Source: Cyanophora paradoxa CCMP329
Taxonomy: Eukaryota; Plantae; Glaucophyta
DNA length: 64,000 bases
Direction: 5' to 3'
NCBI GenBank assembly: GCA_004431415.1
Contig: QPMI01000186.1
Location: forward strand, 62,001-126,000
The notes under the pieces: model-generated
Databases searched by the model: none
What the model was told of the DNA's origin: nothing
Seen by the model: only the letters and a program-made list of their open reading frames with translations
Part shown: positions 3,757 to 17,745 of the stretch, in pieces
Layout: each line of letters begins with the position of its first letter
Position numbering within the stretch: position 1 is the first letter of the stretch
Position numbers and translations under genes: made by a program

Positions 3757-6328
3757 ATGAGGCCGCAGATGGGGAGGTCGCGCATCGGGACGCGCGTGGG
3801 CGTTCTGATCTTCCTAGCCGCGGGCGTCGTGTTGTACAGTGTTGCGACCTCGCGGCTCAACCTCGGGGCCCTGGAGCGGCTGGTGAGCGCCTACGCCGCC
3901 GCGCACTCGCCCGTCGATGCATGTTTCGCCCGCTCACTGTGCCTTGCTTTCAGAGGAGACGCGCGCGGCCAGCGTCGGCCTTCGCGGGCGGTCCCGAGGA
4001 ATCGCCGATCGTTGAAACAGAAAGTAGCAGTAGCTCAGCGCAGGCAGGCGTCTCTGGCCTTTTCGAGGAGGCCGCAGCAGCGAGCGAGGCGGCTGAGGTG
4101 GATCCCGGCGAGTCCGCAACAGCTCAGAGCGGTGACGAAGCGCCGGCGAAACCAGGCTCGACGGAGAAGGGCGAGCCTGCGTCGGGACACGCGGCAGCGA
4201 AGCCCGTCAAGCACGCGTCGGCCAAGAACCAAATTGTTGCGGGGACGAAGCCGATTGCCCTGGCGATGGCCTTCAACCTGAAGCCCAAGCCGCACCTCAT
4301 CCCGATAGCGCAGCGCTCCGTGCAGAACAAGGAGGTGCGCCGCGCCGCGCCGCGCCTTGCCGCGGGCGCCACCCGCTTCACGCGCCCCGCCAGCTGTACG
4401 CGCGGCTGCACGGGTACTCGTTCATCCTCGACCCGCCCGACGAGATCGACATGAAGCGGTGCGGGGGGGGAGGGGCCTCCGCCAGCGCGTCTCCGTCTGA
4501 AGGCGCGCCCGCCCCGGGGGGCGCCCTCGCAGGCCCCCGGCCTGGCACAAGGTGCTGGAGGTCAGGAGGTGAGCAAGGGGCGCCCCCGTCGCCTCCTACC
4601 CCCCTGCTCACTTCCCTCCGCCTCTCCAGAAACCTCGACCACTTCGAGTGGGTCTGCTGGTTCGACGGTGCGCGTGGGTCCCCTCCACTCCCCCCTCCCC
4701 CCCTGCTCTCCATCCCCCTCCCCCTCCTCCCCCTATCCAGATCCCTCTCTGACGCGCTCGGCCAGTGGACACGGTGATCGCCAACCTCGAGATCAAGATC
4801 GAGGACCTGGGCGAGCCCCCCCGCGCCCCCTCCTCCCCCCTTGCCCTCCCCCTCCTCCCTGCCTCCCCTCCCTGATTCCCGCTCGCTGCAGTCGGGGACG
4901 GGACGCGGGAGCTGGTCGTGGCGAAGACGTTCGAGTTCTTTGACATCGGCGAGGAGAGTGCGCGCCCCTCCCCACGAGTCCCGACCCCCAAGGCCCCGCG
5001 CCCCGTGCCCCCTGCCTCGGCGCGCTCTAGAGCCTTCGGCGGCGCCCCCAGCGCCGGCAGGCGACGCCGGGGCGAGCGCCGGGAGACATCAGAGCTAGAT
5101 CGCACAGCCCGGGCCCCTCCCGCCTGCAGCCTTCGCCCGCTCCGCGCCGGCGCCCGCGTCCGACGCTGGCCGCCGCGCAGCCAAGCAGCAGGAGCACCGC
5201 CTCAACAGCGGTGCCGGCCCCCGCCGCGCCCCTGCGGGGCGGCGCGGGCTGAGGGGCGGCCGGGGGCAGGGGTCTACTGCATGCGGAACTCGAGCTGGTC
5301 GCGCATGTTCCTCGACCGCGTCTACGCCGAGGTCCGCCCGCTCCGCCCGCTCCGCCCGCCCCGCCCCGGCCCCGCCCGGCCCCCGGCCCCCCTCGCCCCA
5401 CCGCCCTCGCCCGCGCGGCCTGAGCCGGCCCCTCTCGCGCGGCGCGCAGGAGAAGCTGATCAACCACGCGAACTGGGAGCAGCGCGCCATGCAGGTCCTC
5501 CTGCGGTGCGCCCCGCGCGGGGCCGGGCAGCGCCACCGCCGGGGGGCTCGGCTGAGGGCCGGTCGGGGGCGGGGCAGGGACAACCCGGAGTGGCTGGAGC
5601 ACGTGCTCTACCGCGACGAGCACGAGATGAACGTCCACAACTGTGCGCAGCGCCTCGGGGGCCCCTCGCGCCTGCCCGGCTCGGCTGATTGGCGGGCGGG
5701 GGCGCAGGGCAGTACAAGCCGGGCGACTTCGTGGTGCACTTCTACGGCTGGGTGCGCCCCCGCCCCGCCTCGCGCCCCGCGCCCCGCCCCGCGCGCCCCG
5801 GGGCGCGGGCCAAGGTGGGGGGCGGGGGCGCAGAACTGCCAGCCGAAGAAGTGCGAGGTGGACATTCGCGAGCGCCTCGACGCCCTCCTCGAGCAGGCCC
5901 GCACCCGGCCCCGGCCCCGGCCCCGGCCCCGGCCCCCTCAGCGGCCCCGCAGGAGCGCAAGGGGCACCCCGAGGAGGTCGCCGCCTCCGTCGCCGGCCTC
6001 AACCTCATCGCCGCCGTGCCCGGCCCCGCCCCCTCCCCCTTCTCCCGCCCGCCCCGCGCCGCCCCCTGACGGCGGGGCAGACGTACCCCGAGCTGACGAT
6101 CGAGGAGCTGCGGAAGGAGGCGGAGGCGCGGGACCGGGCCGAGCGCGAGCGCAAGGAGGCCCGCCCCCCCGGCGCCGCCCCCGGGGCCGGGGCCGCCCCC
6201 TCCTCACCCGCCCCGCGCAGGCCGAGGAGCGGGCCAAGGCGGAGAAGGAGGGGAAGGAGAAGGAGGGGAAGCAGGGGAGGAGGCGGGCCCTCGCGCTGCC
6301 CCCCGACGACCACAGCGTCTGCTTCTAG
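3757..6328 (+). CDS. GT34 (GMA12/MNN10-like) galactosyl/xylosyl-transferase, type II membrane protein, multi-exon
   Basis: N-terminal TM segment (VGVLIFLAAGVVLYSV) and stem, then NKELYARLHGY, PAWHKV, FEWVCWFDVDTVIAN (DxD), LNSGVYCMRNSSWSRMFLDRV, WEQRAM and YKPGDFVVHFYG. Confidence 0.85.
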
Positions 6329-12660: not shown

Positions 12661-14538
12661 CTAGTCGCGCTTGCCGCGCCAGTGGGCGCAGGTACGGCCG
12701 ACGGCCTCCTCAAAGGAGTACGTCTTGACGTAGCCGAGCTCGTCGCGGGCAGCGGAGAGGTCGAAGGTGTAGTTCCGCTGCGTGATGCTGCCGGCCCGGC
12801 GGCGCCGGGGCGAGGCTCGAGCTCGGCGGGGCGGCGGTGGCGGGCGGGAGGGGCGGCGCACGTGAGGGCGTCGAAGTTGAGGCGGAGGAAGTCGAGGGGC
12901 AGGCTGCGGGGGCGTCAGCGGCGGCCGCCGGCGAGGGAGGGGCTGGCAGGGCAGGGGCCGGCCTCCCGCGGGTGAGGAAGTTGAGGACCTCGACGAGGGC
13001 GGCGACGGGCCGCAGGAGGGCGCCCGGCACGCGCCGCGCCCGGGCCCGCGGGCCCCGCAGCTCCCGGCACAGCGCGTCCGAGATCTCCCCGTACGTCGTC
13101 CTGGCCCCGGCTTGCAAGTGCGCGCGTTGCGGGGCCGGCGGGCGGGGCGCACGTCCCGTCGCTGATGAAGTAGGCCTTGCCGGCGATGGGCGAGGCGGGG
13201 CCCTCCCGCAGCAGCCGCTCCGCAGCCAGAATGTGCGCGTCCGCCAGGTTCTGCCCGCGGCGCACGGCTGGGACGCGGGTACAGGAGCGGTCGCGAGGGG
13301 GGTACCTCGACGTAGACGGCGTCGCAGAGGTGTGTGCCGGGCCCCAGGATGGTCCCGTGGGAGAGCACCGAGGTCGTGAAGTTGTGGTCGCGTATCCCCC
13401 AGAGCACCTGCGGGGTACGGCGTCAGAGGCGAGGTGGAGGCGGGGAGGAGGCAGGCCGGGCGCACGAGGGGCCGCAGGGCGACGGTCCGGAGGGGAGAGT
13501 ACCGCCCGCCGGCCGCCTCGACAGCGCCCGGCCTGCGGGGCCCGACGTCGGCGGGGGGTACGTTCGCGGCTCAATCAGGGGGGCGGCCGCACTTGGTGGA
13601 GGCGTCGCGGACGAGCTCCTCGGCCACGGCCTTGGTGTACCCGTACTGGGTCGCGTTTGGGACCTTGGAGGGCCTGCGCCGGGCCTCAGAAGAAGGGGGT
13701 ACACGGTTTCATCGAAGAAGAAAGGGGGCCCGGCGGGCCTGAGCGAGTCGGCCTCTCGCTTCTTGAGGACGTCGCCGCCGTTCATGACGGTGGCCGCCGA
13801 CGACGTGTACACGAGCGCGGGGACGGCCGCCCGAACGCACGCGGCGACCACGTTCGCCGTGCCTGCGCGCGCCCGGTCGGGCCCGTCAGCGCGGGCGCGC
13901 TGCGATCGCGAGGAGGCTTCCGCGCGCGCCGATGACGTTCGTCTCCCACAGCTTTCGGAGGTCGGCGCGCAGGCTGATGAGCGACGCGGCGTGAATGACG
14001 ACGTCGGCCCCTGCGCGAGCCGCGGCGGCCGCGGGCGTCGGGGTCGAGTGCCGCGCAGGGAGGCGAGCGCCGCGCGCACCGATGCAGACCTGCAGCACGT
14101 CCGAGGGGTTAACCAGGTCGCCGCAAACGAACTTGACGCGCGTGTCGTCCGTGTGCCACGACTTCCGCAGGTCGAACGCTCGAATGAGGCACTGCTTGCC
14201 TTGCTGGCCCGACAGCAGACGCTCGACGATGTGGCGGCCAAGGCAACCGCTCGCGCCGGTCACGACGTACACTGTCGGCCCGCTGCCGGCAGGTCGTCGC
14301 GTCTGCGTTGCGTCGCGCGCGCGTGAGCCCGTGCGCTCTGCATCGCGCGTGCTGCGCTTTCACCTTGAGCAAGCCTTCATCTGGACGGTCTGGACAAGGC
14401 GGCACTGCGGGCACTGCGAGAGCGCGGTTCGGAGCTGCGGCGGGAGGAGCGCGCGATCCATTACGAACCCGTGAGGCGACGGTAGGCCCATGTGAGCGCG
14501 AGCAGGGCCACCCAAGCGGCCAGAGCGGCCCACAGCAT
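12661..14538 (-). CDS. 3-beta-hydroxysteroid dehydrogenase / NSDHL-like extended SDR with N-terminal membrane anchor
   Basis: MLWAALAAWVALLALTW anchor; YVVTGASGCLGRHIVERLL (GxxGxxG); VIHAAS; NVIGTANVVAAC..LVYTSSA; YGYTKAVAE (YxxxK); VYVENLADAHILAAERL..IAGKAYFISDG. Confidence 0.85.
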
Positions 14539-14583
14539 GGCTAGGCCCGCTGGGGGGGATACTGGCGTCTGGTTCACTGAGCG

Positions 14584-16289
14584 ATGGCCGTCCCTGCTGC
14601 CTTCGGCGGCGCATACCGGCGGGAACTGCATGCGGCGATCGATGGTGAGGCCCGCACGCCCAGCCCCCGCCAGGCCCCTCACCGCACCGCACGCAGCCGT
14701 GCGCAAGGCCGCGCGCCTCTCGTCGGCGATCCAGAGCAGGCTGGGCCGCGATGAGCAGGTCTCGAAGGTAGACGAGAGCCCTGTGACGATCGCAGGTCGG
14801 CGCCAGCGCAGCCCGCGCCAGTCGGTCAGCCGATGTGCCTCGCAGACTTCGGCGTTCAGGCGGTGTGCACGCTGCTGCTCAAGAAGGCCTTCCCTGATTA
14901 CGGCTGGGTGGCGGAAGAGGACAGCGCCTTCCTGCGGAAGCCCGTGCGTCGATCGGTTTGTCGGGGGCGACTGCGCACGCGAGCGAGCCGGGGCGTGCAG
15001 GAGGGCGCGAGCAACCTGAGGAAGATCGCGGAGGCGGTGAACGCAGCGACGGAGGGCTCGTACAGCGAGGCCGAGGTCCTGGACGCCCTCGACGTGGGCC
15101 TCGGCCCGGGCGGCGCCACGGGCCGCCACTGGGTCCTCGACCCCGTGGACGGCACGAAGGGTTTCATCCGCGGGGACCAGTACGCGATCGCGCTGGGCCT
15201 GCTGGACGCCGGCAAGGTCGTCCTGGGCATCCTCGGGTGCCCCAACCTGCCTTGGAACCTCGAGGAGCCGGTGCGCCCCGCCGCGCTCCTCCGCCTCGCG
15301 CCCCGCGGAGCGAGCGAGCGAGGCGGCGCGCGGACGCAGAGCGCGCCGCGGGGGTGCCTCCTGTACGGCGTCCGCGGGGAGGGCTCCTACCAGGTCTCCT
15401 TCGACGGCGCCCGCGGGCCCGTCAAGTGCGCCGTCTCAAAGGCCCGCCCCCCGCCCCGCCCCGCCCCGCCCCGCCCCGGCCAGGCGCGCGGGGTCTGACG
15501 GGCGGGCAGGTGAGCGATACCGCGTGGGCGCGGGTTGCCGAGAGCTACGAGAGCGCGCACTCGTCGCACGACACGACGGGGGCCATCGGGGCGACCCTCG
15601 GGACGTCCATAGCGCCCCTGCGCATGGACTCCCAGGCCAAGTACGGTGATTGACGCACCCCGCCCGCCCGTTTCGCCCTTAGGCCGCGCGGGGCGGGGAC
15701 GCCTGTTTCGCGGAGTCGTATGAGACGAGCCATTCCCCCCACGAGACGACGGCGGCGATAGCGGCCCGCCTCGAGATCGCCCGGCCGCCCATCCGCATGG
15801 ACTCGCAGGCGAAATACGGTACCCGGGCAGACGTCGCCTCTAGCCGTGCCGGGGCGGGCCCGCCGCGGGGCGCCGGCCCCGCTCTGAGGCGGCTCCGCGC
15901 AGGGGTGCTGGCGCGGGGCGAGGCGGACGTGTACCTGCGCTTCCCGAAGAAGGGGTACAAGGAGAACATCTGGGACCACTGCGGGGGCGCCCTCATCATC
16001 GAGGAGGCCGGTGCGCGGCTCGCCCCTCCGCGGCCCCTCCCGCCGGGGCCGCCGCAGCCGAACGCGGCGCAGGGGGCTCGGTCACGGACGAGGAGGGCAA
16101 GCCACTCGACTTCTCCCAGGTGCGCCAGCGCCCCCCCTCCGCCTGCCCCCCTTCCTCCCCCCGCCAGGCGGGCCGACGGGCGGGGGCCAGGGGCGGAAGC
16201 TGTCGACGGTGGGGATCATGGCGAGCAACGGGCAGCTGCACCCGCTCGTCGTCGCCGCCGTCCGCCACGTCCTCGCCGGCCAGCCCTAG
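14584..16289 (+). CDS. SAL1: 3'(2'),5'-bisphosphate nucleotidase (SAL1/HAL2/MET22 family), with a duplicated internal exon
   Basis: MAVPAAFGGAYRRELHAAIDAVRKAARLS; KVDESPVTIADFGVQA; VAEEDSAFL; WVLDPVDGTKGFIRGDQYAIALGL; GCPNLP; RMDSQAKYG; YKENIWDHCGGALIIEEAGG. Confidence 0.92.
15510..15645 (+). other. SAL1 alternative exon A (136 nt)
   Basis: ctgac..ggcag|GTGAGC...AAGTACG|gtgatt, encoding VSDTAWARVAESYESAHSSHDTTGAIGATLGTSIAPLRMDSQAKY(G). Confidence 0.85.
15683..15818 (+). other. SAL1 alternative exon B (136 nt)
   Basis: cccttag|GCCGCG...AAATACG|gtaccc, encoding AARGGDACFAESYETSHSPHETTAAIAARLEIARPPIRMDSQAKY(G). Confidence 0.85.
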
Positions 16290-16370
16290 CGCCCCGCCGC
16301 CCCCGGCGCGGCTTCGCGAGGCCGAGCCTTCTTCTTTTAAGCGTGACTCTGCCGAGAAGCGAAGCTGCCG

Positions 16371-17745
16371 CTACTGCGGGCCGCGGGGCTTGCGGAGGGG
16401 GTACGCCTTCTCGGCGGGGTCCCCGCGGAAGGGGAGGAACTGGGCGAGGAGCTCGAGGGGCGGGCGGTCCCACCAGCTGCGCGCCCGTCGGCGAGCTCGC
16501 CCCGTGAGACAGAATCAAAGCTCAGGGCCGGGGCGGCGCTGCGCGCACTCCTCGTGGTCGTAGACGAGGCCGGCCTCGTTGAGCTTGTACGTGCTCTGCG
16601 GCGCCGGCTCGGCGAGGGGCCGGGGGCGCGCCGCGGCCGGCCCTGCGGGGGGCGCGGGGGGGCCCGCACCTCCCCGTTGAAGAAGAACTTGGGCTTCCAG
16701 GGCAGCAGGAGGGTCCCCTGCGTCCCCCGCCTTCAGCGCGGCGCCGGCCCGCGGGGCGGGGGCGCGGGGGAGGGGGCGGGGGGGCGGGGGGCGGGCCTGG
16801 AGGGTCCAGGTGGCGAGGACGGTGTCTGGGGCGGGGCTCTCGAGCTCGCGCAGCTCGAAGCCGAGCTCCGTGAAGTACTTCGCGTGGTACCTGCCGCCCG
16901 GCTCGCCCTCGCGGCGCCCCCGCCGGGGAGCGCCCTCCCTCACCTCAACGTCCACCAGACCGTCTGCGGGGCGGGGCCTCGGGGCGTCAGCACTCGCAGC
17001 CGATGCGATGGGCCCGACTCGAGCGCGAAAGCGCACGCGGTACCCTTCCATGCCCGAGAACTTGTTGACGGGGTCCCTGCGTGTGCACAGCGGCCCGTCT
17101 AGGCCGGCGCACGCGATCCACCAATCTCAGAACTTCGGAACGGCGCACCTAAACTCGATGGACTCGTCATAGATGCTGCGCGACGCGGCAAACTCAGGCG
17201 CCGTGCCGAGCGGCCTGCGCGTCGCGTGGGCGCCGGCGCCGGGGCGGACCTGTAGTCGACGTCGCGCTCGAACATCGCGGGCAAGTCCTGCGCGCGCCTC
17301 CGTGAGCGGCCGATACACAGAGGACGAGGGGGAAAAGAAAGAAGAGCGCGCCCTCCGCAGTACGTCGAAGATATGCTGGATGCGCTCCGGCGTGCGGAGG
17401 TCGCCTGCAGCTGCGCGCGTGCGCCGGGCCGGGCCGCGGGCTCAGCGAGCAGCCGAACGGAATCGGAGGCCGGCTCAGCCGCGCCGGACCTTGGCCGGGC
17501 GCCTCGGCGCTGCACGTCCACGTGCGCCAGGAGCGCGGCAGGCGCCTCAGCGGGTCCCCGGCGATCCACGTGCTCTGCGGCGGCCCAGCCACCTGGAAGG
17601 TGGAACGAGCGGCGCGACTTGCCCGAGACATCCCGGCCGGCGCCAGCGCGGCGCAGGTCGGGGCCGCCACGGGCCGCCAGGTGGGGCGGCCGACGCTGGT
17701 CGGGCCCGCAGGAGCGCCAAGCACGAACGCCGTTGGCTGCGTCAT
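16371..17745 (-). CDS. DUF2358 (SnoaL/NTF2-like) protein, probably plastid-targeted
   Basis: Presequence MTQPTAFVLGAP..; DLPAMFERDVDYSIYDESIEFRDPVNKFSGMEGYR; VLATWTLQGTLLLPWKPKFFFNGESTYKLNEAGLVYDHEDWWD. Confidence 0.82.

Follow-up and report, generated by a model that had tools for sequence, protein, structure and literature searches.

The 64-kb window (the whole stretch of Cyanophora paradoxa DNA that was analysed) has a G+C content of 72% and contains a HAL2/SAL1-type 3′(2′),5′-bisphosphate nucleotidase gene, in which two homologous exons, here called exon A and exon B, lie side by side between a common upstream exon (exon 5) and a common downstream exon (exon 7). The published genome of C. 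paradoxa has 67.6% GC, 9.2 introns per gene, and a mean intron length of 86 bp, and its gene models were described as needing curation (PMC6704402). The features of the locus and the evidence for each are listed below, P0290 being the annotated model of this gene and P0151 a homologue from Gloeochaete wittrockiana.

14584..16289, + strand: whole coding span of the HAL2/SAL1-type 3′(2′),5′-bisphosphate nucleotidase gene (RNA contig joints; tblastn of P0290 and P0151 on the window)
15340..15441, + strand: exon 5, the common upstream exon, ending in phase 0 (...CAVSK); joint 15270>15340 in four runs
15442..15509, + strand: intron between exon 5 and exon A, 68 nt, with a GC donor (gcccgc) and a (CCCCG)n repeat; RNA depth zero over 15465-15507
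15510..15645, + strand: exon A, 136 nt, phase 0 to 1, the minor alternative; motifs ESYESAHSSH and PLRMDSQAKY; RNA contigs X1 record 2 and X2 record 7
15646..15682, + strand: spacer, 37 nt, with the exon A donor gtgatt, TTGAC at 15650-15654, an in-frame TGA at 15651-15653, a C/T-rich tract, and the exon B acceptor cccttag
15683..15818, + strand: exon B, 136 nt, phase 0 to 1, the default alternative; motifs ESYETSHSPH and PIRMDSQAKY; joints 15441>15683 and 15818>15903
15819..15902, + strand: intron after exon B, 84 nt, GT..AG, with CTGAG 15 nt from the acceptor; RNA depth zero; joint in four runs
15903..16010, + strand: exon 7, the common downstream exon (G|GG GTG CTG...), carrying the metal-site motif IWDHCGG; RNA joints and tblastn

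Each mRNA comprises nine coding exons with a total length of 1020 nt, and the product has 339 amino acids with exon A or exon B alike. As a whole protein, P0290 scored 374.7 bits against the NCBIfam model TIGR01330 (cut-off 267.05), and two Gloeochaete proteins, P0151 and P0404, scored 379.0 and 380.6 bits, respectively, against the same model; the Pfam family PF00459 was precomputed for all three. The metal-binding motifs of the Li+-sensitive phosphatase superfamily (DPxDGT and WDxxxG) were found in the translations, as WVLDPVDGTKGF in exon 4 and IWDHCGG in exon 7, and their columns are invariant in alignments A3 and A4. Judged by these protein comparisons, the Cyanophora gene belongs to TIGR01330, i.e., the HAL2/SAL1 3′(2′),5′-bisphosphate nucleotidases.

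The public model P0290 (EukProt EP00741_Cyanophora_paradoxa_P004406, gene tig00000802_g4277.t1), whose exons are identical to the window, joins exon A onto the last 19 codons of exon B, so that the motif RMDSQAKY is present twice. No RNA joint backing this junction was found in the contigs of the four runs described below. The public model at this locus is wrong, being a chimera of A and part of B, and is corrected by the analysis of the exon pair.

A previous reading made from the DNA letters alone (the sequence-only reading) had pointed to two homologous, open 136-nt exons at these positions, both running from phase 0 to phase 1 and both containing a segment with HSxH and RMDSQAKY, and all of this is borne out. 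Exons A and B are neighbouring homologous exons of equal length and the same phase; each has 45 open codons and one further base, and a stretch of 37 nt lies between them. They are identical at 82 of 136 nucleotides and at 24 of 45 amino acids. With regard to codon positions 1, 2, and 3, identity was found at 31, 30, and 20 of 45, respectively, the third being the most diverged, and the likeness is concentrated in codons 10-45 (68% at the nucleotide level), the first 27 nt being only about 30% identical. In tblastn searches of the 64-kb window, the two peptides matched each other reciprocally (E=5e-12), and neither gave a third copy or paralogue of the exon above noise; thus, exactly two copies are present, and their likeness is far beyond chance. 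Both peptides align to residues 224-263 of SAL1 and 228-268 of HAL2 in PDB, and the nucleotide-site motifs HSxH and DSQxKY are carried by exon A and by exon B. The GC3 of exon A is 0.93, like that of the gene's other exons. A dN/dS comparison of the two exons, which had been suggested as a check, gave 0.39 (0.29 over codons 10-45) and is one of the signs of coding constraint on both exons that are described below.

Exon usage in Cyanophora RNA

RNA data were taken from the Logan contigs of four runs from four studies (X1, X2, X8, and X17), which were placed on positions 14400-16500 and which show the presence of isoforms, not their ratios. Splicing is evident in all four runs, in which eight introns of 50-84 nt are removed at GT..AG joints. 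The path from exon 5 through exon B to exon 7 was found in 4/4 runs, including the joint 15818>15903 in each of them, and in X17 it is carried whole by a 1373-nt contig (record 5). That 15441 stands directly before 15683 is read from the coordinates of this contig and from a loose end in X8, AGTGCGCCGTCTCAA, which directly abuts 15681 and for which a GC..AG intron of 15442-15682 is the sole canonical reading. One detail of the sequence-only reading is corrected by these joints, as the downstream exon, placed there at about 15904, actually starts at 15903; furthermore, the exon 5 donor at 15442 is GC rather than GT.

Coverage of exon A is limited to X1 and X2; X17 and X8 have none. The introns flanking the pair are at zero depth (15465-15507 before A and 15820-15890 after B), and the exon A signal therefore comes from neither DNA nor unspliced precursor. 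Productive use of exon A is seen as the joint 15645>15903 in X2 only, i.e., one contig joint with 27 letters on its short side. On the upstream side, record 2 of X1 is a 230-nt contig that begins with 27 letters without an adjacent placement and continues over 15508-15710 without difference, a stretch that takes in exon A, all of the spacer, and the first part of exon B. Since 27+2 letters are what is expected from a 31-mer graph at the fork between exon 5→A and exon 5→B, they probably represent the junction of exon 5 to exon A (15441>15510), a reading that uses the geometry of the contig and the zero intron depth. With this junction, each exon would be joined alone to the same two flanks.

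The claim that one gene yields two isoforms thus holds in so far as exon B is used in four runs, exon A is joined to exon 7 in X2, and a full-length pair occurs in Gloeochaete (see below); it has to be qualified in that exon usage is very unequal, B being the default and A a minority form that is absent from two of the four runs.

A splice from exon A to exon B (15645>15683) was not found in the contigs of any of the four runs, in which rare variants are dropped and from which a rare A-B splice may therefore escape. X1 and X2 do contain RNA in which both exons are included, the spacer between them being retained and introducing a premature stop; in X1, the exon A contig runs through the spacer into B, and the contig from B to exon 7 is unbranched. 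By local translation, the frame of the spacer-retained form ends in ...KYGD* at the TGA of 15651-15653, 6 nt past exon A. As 136 equals 3n+1, a transcript lacking both exons would be out of frame. The frame is thus disrupted when both exons or neither is included, as had been predicted from an exon length that is not divisible by three. A large share of the A-containing RNA in Cyanophora is the both-included, premature-stop form, and the exclusivity is leaky.

Several of these observations could also be read as the mark of an exon that is mainly a 'poison' or regulatory one in Cyanophora, lowering SAL1 output, with a negligible amount of isoform A protein. The X1 contig that reads from A through the spacer into B, the unbranched B→7 contig in the same run, the absence of exon A from X17 and X8, and the stop just past A would all suit such a role, but the 15645>15903 joint in X2 would not, and the coding constraint described below also bears on this point.

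The low usage of exon A is the only observation in favour of a different view, namely that one copy is a decaying, unused duplicate or that the duplication is an assembly artefact. Both copies occur, however, in spliced RNA contigs from independent studies, and one contig spans A, the spacer, and B. In addition, 94-97% of the sampled words, among them words from introns, are contained in two runs from 2012 whose kind is given as '?' (presumably DNA). Moreover, collapse or expansion of the copies by an assembler is impossible because they are only 60% identical, and coding constraint is seen on both of them. The check for an artefact that had been proposed earlier is consequently negative, and a dead or spurious copy is extremely improbable.

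The spacer and a putative steric mechanism

The spacer (15646-15682) starts with gtgaTTGAC and ends with cccttag. The presence of TTGAC near the exon A donor and the unusual shortness of the spacer had both been noticed in the sequence, and both are confirmed: TTGAC lies at 15650-15654, and the length of 37 nt is below that of all eight RNA-confirmed introns of the gene (50-84 nt). The minimum for a splicing-competent intron in Cyanophora was judged from these eight introns of the SAL1 gene (at least 50 nt) and from the published mean of 86 bp (PMC6704402). In the literature on mutually exclusive exons, a distance from donor to branch point of under about 50 nt is used as the steric criterion, and 57 human clusters fall within it (PMC5740500); in the SAL1 pair, the whole spacer is 37 nt long. 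Adenosines occur in the spacer only at +4, +8 (in TTGAC), +12, and +36, and any branch point within the spacer for the exon B acceptor would therefore lie within 12 nt of the exon A donor. It appears that the spacer is too short for splicing, with candidate branch adenosines near the A donor, which would make the cause of exclusion a steric one.

The interpretation put forward in the sequence-only reading is thus supported, and the steric architecture agrees with the RNA data. The lack of a 15645>15683 joint in the four runs, the retention of the spacer instead, and the position of the adenosines are consistent with it, although RNA including both exons is seen.

The acceptor tract of exon B is C/T-rich, whereas the acceptor region of exon A is purine-rich, with a branch-like CTGAC at 15495-15499, 11 nt upstream of the acceptor, in the intron of 15442..15509. 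This difference fits the use of exon B as the default. Competing RNA structures were also considered as a mechanism of exclusivity but are not supported, the fold of 15430-15915 being no better than those of shuffled sequences (z=-0.59).

Many G/C-rich inverted repeats are found, in a number that corresponds to the chance expectation for a region of 72% GC.

A general scheme can be proposed as follows. An old tandem duplication of one 136-nt SAL1/HAL2 coding exon would have created a mutually exclusive pair, the duplicated exon encoding a strand, the HSxH loop, a helix, and the DSQxKY motif at the site of the nucleotide 5′-phosphate and adenine. The GC donor of exon 5 would serve both A and B. 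Exon B, with its pyrimidine-rich acceptor, would be the default, and exon A, with its purine-rich acceptor region, would, in some samples, be used by a minority of the transcripts. When A has been picked, its donor would be restricted to the exon 7 acceptor, the 37-nt spacer not being removable. Under a regime of intron definition, the short intron from B to exon 7 may often be out before the A donor finds the exon 7 acceptor, in which case the spacer would stay; the TGA past A would then end the frame, giving a dead-end transcript that is probably degraded. The gene would thereby yield two enzymes, both of full length and distinct from each other only in the 45 residues around the substrate pocket.

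The Gloeochaete pair and coding constraint

The closest homologue cluster is that of Gloeochaete wittrockiana (MMETSP0308), which belongs to the order Gloeochaetales, Cyanophora being a member of the Cyanophorales. The Gloeochaete proteins P0151 (A-type) and P0404 (B-type) are identical save for 45 residues, which stand at the same place as in the Cyanophora pair; P0151 carries ESYESAHSSH and PLR like exon A, and P0404 carries ESYETSHSPH and PIR like exon B. At the transcript level, a single sample contains L001 and L003, each with a length of 1910 nt; all of their 54 differences fall within nt 703-837, and their flanks of 702 and 1072 nt are identical. The B-type transcript was also found in a second sample (L002). 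The possibility that the two forms are paralogues is ruled out by the flanks, which are identical over 1774 nt. As judged from their transcripts, the Gloeochaete forms are produced from one gene by alternative splicing of a mutually exclusive block of 136 nt.

Between the two genera, the A blocks are 60% identical (27/45), the B blocks 53% (24/45), and the rest of the protein 63%; within species, A and B share 24/45 residues in Cyanophora and 26/45 in Gloeochaete. The site patterns among the four segments comprise four type-specific, three species-specific, and zero crossed sites. The string ETSHSPH (the TS..P state around the HSxH loop) was found only in the B forms of Cyanophora and Gloeochaete when 411 homologues were fetched. 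In an ML tree of the 45 columns with 70 outgroup segments, A-A/B-B orthology was not separated; the A and B segments of Gloeochaete (GwA and GwB) were weakly joined (75/41), and a grouping of the two A segments (CpA and GwA) was neither shown nor rejected (p-AU 0.31).

Such a pattern might result from independent duplications in the Cyanophora and Gloeochaete lineages, or from gene conversion homogenising the copies. The identity of A and B within a species, which is as high as that of the same type between species, the three species-specific sites, and the weak pairing of GwA with GwB in the tree agree with an origin of this kind. However, the same exon, with the same 136-nt length and boundaries, is involved in both species, and the four type-specific sites include a derived motif of three residues (TS..P) that is absent from all others of the 411 homologues, with no crossed sites. 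Species-specific sites, on the other hand, would be expected if the segment co-evolved with the remaining protein. Separate origins or conversion are thus unlikely, and the comparison of the four segments makes it probable that there was a single ancestral duplication of the exon in glaucophytes.

Beyond these two genera, a search with P0404:205-270 for exon-sized fragments gave no further glaucophyte sequences, and a metagenome scan with P0404 yielded 80 loci with ≤48% identity, none of them from glaucophytes. Nor was a genomic sequence from a glaucophyte other than Cyanophora found. No duplication was found at the loci examined outside glaucophytes, i.e., those of Klebsormidium, Apatococcus, Marchantia, and Closterium, at each of which the segment is single-copy and the exon boundaries differ.

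With regard to constraint, 47 of 94 homologues across the tree score better with exon A and 45 with exon B. All family-invariant columns of the segment are retained by both the A and the B forms, and E225, S226, E228, H231, R252, D254, S255, Q256, K258, and Y259 are intact in the two isoforms of Gloeochaete. Structure prediction by AlphaFold was applied to the two natural Gloeochaete isoforms, and the models are equally confident (pLDDT 93.6 and 93.7); in both, the segment is predicted to form a short helix, a strand, a loop, a helix, and a strand. The identity between the genera, the homologue scores, the dN/dS ratio, the invariant columns, and the models together indicate that both exons are maintained as coding sequence. 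A neutral or mere 'poison' exon would not show such coding constraint, for which it has no need: exon A is open, has the GC3 of a coding exon of this gene, keeps all invariant family residues, and, across an order-level divergence, has about the same identity to the A block of Gloeochaete (60%) as is found for the remainder of the protein (63%), and Gloeochaete has a full-length A-type mRNA. A mainly regulatory role of exon A in Cyanophora is therefore quite unlikely. Instead, it is most probable that an old tandem duplication of the 136-nt exon gave rise to a mutually exclusive pair, which has been kept in glaucophytes and which provides two full-length versions of the enzyme.

The alternative segment lies at the nucleotide site. 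In Hal2p, we take His241, Ser264, and Lys267 of the HSxH and DSQAKY motifs to contact the nucleotide. The changes that distinguish the types lie on either side of the first histidine of HSxH (SAHSSH in A and TSHSPH in B). In addition, the A type has lost the family-consensus cysteine before ESxE, and the B type has a cysteine nearby; the redox cysteines of plant SAL1 (Cys119, Cys167, and Cys190) fall outside the alternative segment. From these residues, a difference between the isoforms in substrate, cation, or redox behaviour is plausible; the differences in substrate or Li+/Na+ sensitivity suggested in the sequence-only reading are speculative. A more tentative proposal, and one in considerable doubt, is that the pair predates crown glaucophytes and encodes catalytically or regulatorily distinct PAP phosphatases. 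The change from SAHSSH to TSHSPH and the loss of the cysteine in the A type might then alter substrate preference or the sensitivity to cations or redox state, and a regulated splice choice might tune PAP (possibly inositol phosphate) signalling, the stop-containing form with the retained spacer serving as an additional off-switch.

Significance and comparison with known systems

In plants, SAL1 controls the PAP retrograde stress signal. To our knowledge, validated mutually exclusive exons come largely from animals and have rarely been documented in algae. A full-text literature search gave no report of mutually exclusive exons in any SAL1/HAL2 gene, in Cyanophora, or in glaucophytes, which agrees with the earlier statement that no such arrangement had been described for SAL1. 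The pair is conserved across two glaucophyte orders and is located on the substrate pocket of a PAP phosphatase, and its putative steric architecture takes an extreme form. The locus may serve as a natural test of the minimum length of spliceosomal introns in the glaucophyte lineage and as a case for asking if mutually exclusive splicing arose independently in Archaeplastida, and it offers a natural pair of enzyme variants for structure-function work on PAP phosphatases. If the tentative proposal of a pre-crown pair with distinct PAP phosphatases is true, it would imply that sterically enforced mutually exclusive splicing also arose outside animals, independently and long ago.

Among known systems, exons 2 and 3 of alpha-tropomyosin represent the 'steric hindrance' type of mutually exclusive exons in animals. 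The SAL1 pair has in common with this type the adjacent homologous exons that stem from tandem duplication, an intervening intron that is apparently too short or whose branch point is apparently too near the upstream donor, and a 3n+1 exon length as a second safeguard. In contrast to the alpha-tropomyosin type, it is found in a glaucophyte alga that is unicellular and whose introns are very short (intron definition), and its spacer is only 37 nt; its failure product is a spacer-retained composite exon and not a doubly spliced mRNA, and its branch point is a candidate one. Exons 4a and 4b of OGDH resemble the SAL1 pair in that they provide alternative versions of a regulatory or ligand site in a metabolic enzyme, but they belong to vertebrates and to another enzyme, and the Ca2+ sensitivity of their isoforms was measured, whereas the SAL1 pair is known from sequence and RNA (PMC7969005). 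Arabidopsis SAL1/FRY1 and yeast Hal2p (PDB 8f9y and 1ka1) are of the same family as the Cyanophora enzyme, and the alternative exon corresponds to residues 219-263 of SAL1 and about 224-268 of Hal2p; unlike the Cyanophora gene, the four Viridiplantae loci checked have a single copy of this segment. Mechanistically, the SAL1 pair is of a known type (putatively steric, by tandem exon duplication), and it is the lineage and the enzyme that are unusual.

The public gene model at SAL1

The public model tig00000802_g4277.t1 (EukProt EP00741_P004406, 358 aa) of SAL1, the HAL2/SAL1-type 3'(2'),5'-bisphosphate nucleotidase gene, is chimeric at window positions 15510-15818, where two homologous 136-nt alternative exons, A (15510-15645) and B (15683-15818), are located. 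It joins exon A to just the final 19 codons of exon B, so that RMDSQAKY is present twice. No RNA joint supports the junction between exons A and B in this model, and the SAL1 products backed by RNA are 339 aa in length, versus 358 aa in the public model.

The exon 5 donor and repeats around exon B

The sequence elements in this region are as follows:

15442-15443, GC donor (AAG/gcccgc) of exon 5, the common upstream exon, shared by the exon 5-A and exon 5-B introns
about 15445-15480, (CCCCG)n repeat downstream of this donor
15673-15703 and 15834-15864, 31-nt direct repeat with 71% identity

This non-GT donor looks weak. Exon B's opening 17 nt (15682-15698) are 88% complementary to the (CCCCG)n repeat, which may be due to chance in a sequence with 72% GC. 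With regard to the direct repeat, the end of the spacer and the start of exon B (15673-15703) resemble a stretch 16 nt inside the intron following exon B, and this could be either a remnant of the border of the duplicated segment or a chance similarity. Exon B cannot be aligned with exon A over its initial 27 nt, whereas the 136-nt alternative A and B blocks in Gloeochaete wittrockiana transcripts are alignable across the matching region.

Transcripts at both ends of SAL1

Two introns lie at the ends of the gene:

14481-14543, 63-nt GT..AG intron in the SAL1 5' leader, seen in RNA run X17 and not seen in the other runs
16477-16548, implied 72-nt intron, CT..AC on the plus strand and GT..AG on the minus strand

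The observations at the 5' end concern the interval 14413-14469 as well. In another run, X1, a 3171-nt contig extends about 2.4 kb upstream past the SAL1 start and thus bridges the upstream gene and SAL1 within a single contig, which could reflect dense packing or read-through. At the 3' end, the loose ends of RNA contigs at 16476 resume at 16549, implying the 72-nt intron, whose minus-strand GT..AG borders indicate that a convergent minus-strand gene overlaps or abuts SAL1 in the same contigs. This matches the overlapping untranslated regions reported for the Cyanophora genome (PMC6704402).

The SAL1 locus of Closterium

The Closterium sp. NIES-68 SAL1 locus (L087) contains the following element:

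5059-5165, diverged second copy of a partial exon

It repeats, at 72-75% aa identity, the 3' portion of the exon that precedes it (P0369 residues 265-297) and is located in an intron, immediately upstream of the next exon. Here, in a further SAL1 gene, part of an exon has been duplicated in tandem, and the exon involved is different from that of the Cyanophora exon A/B pair.
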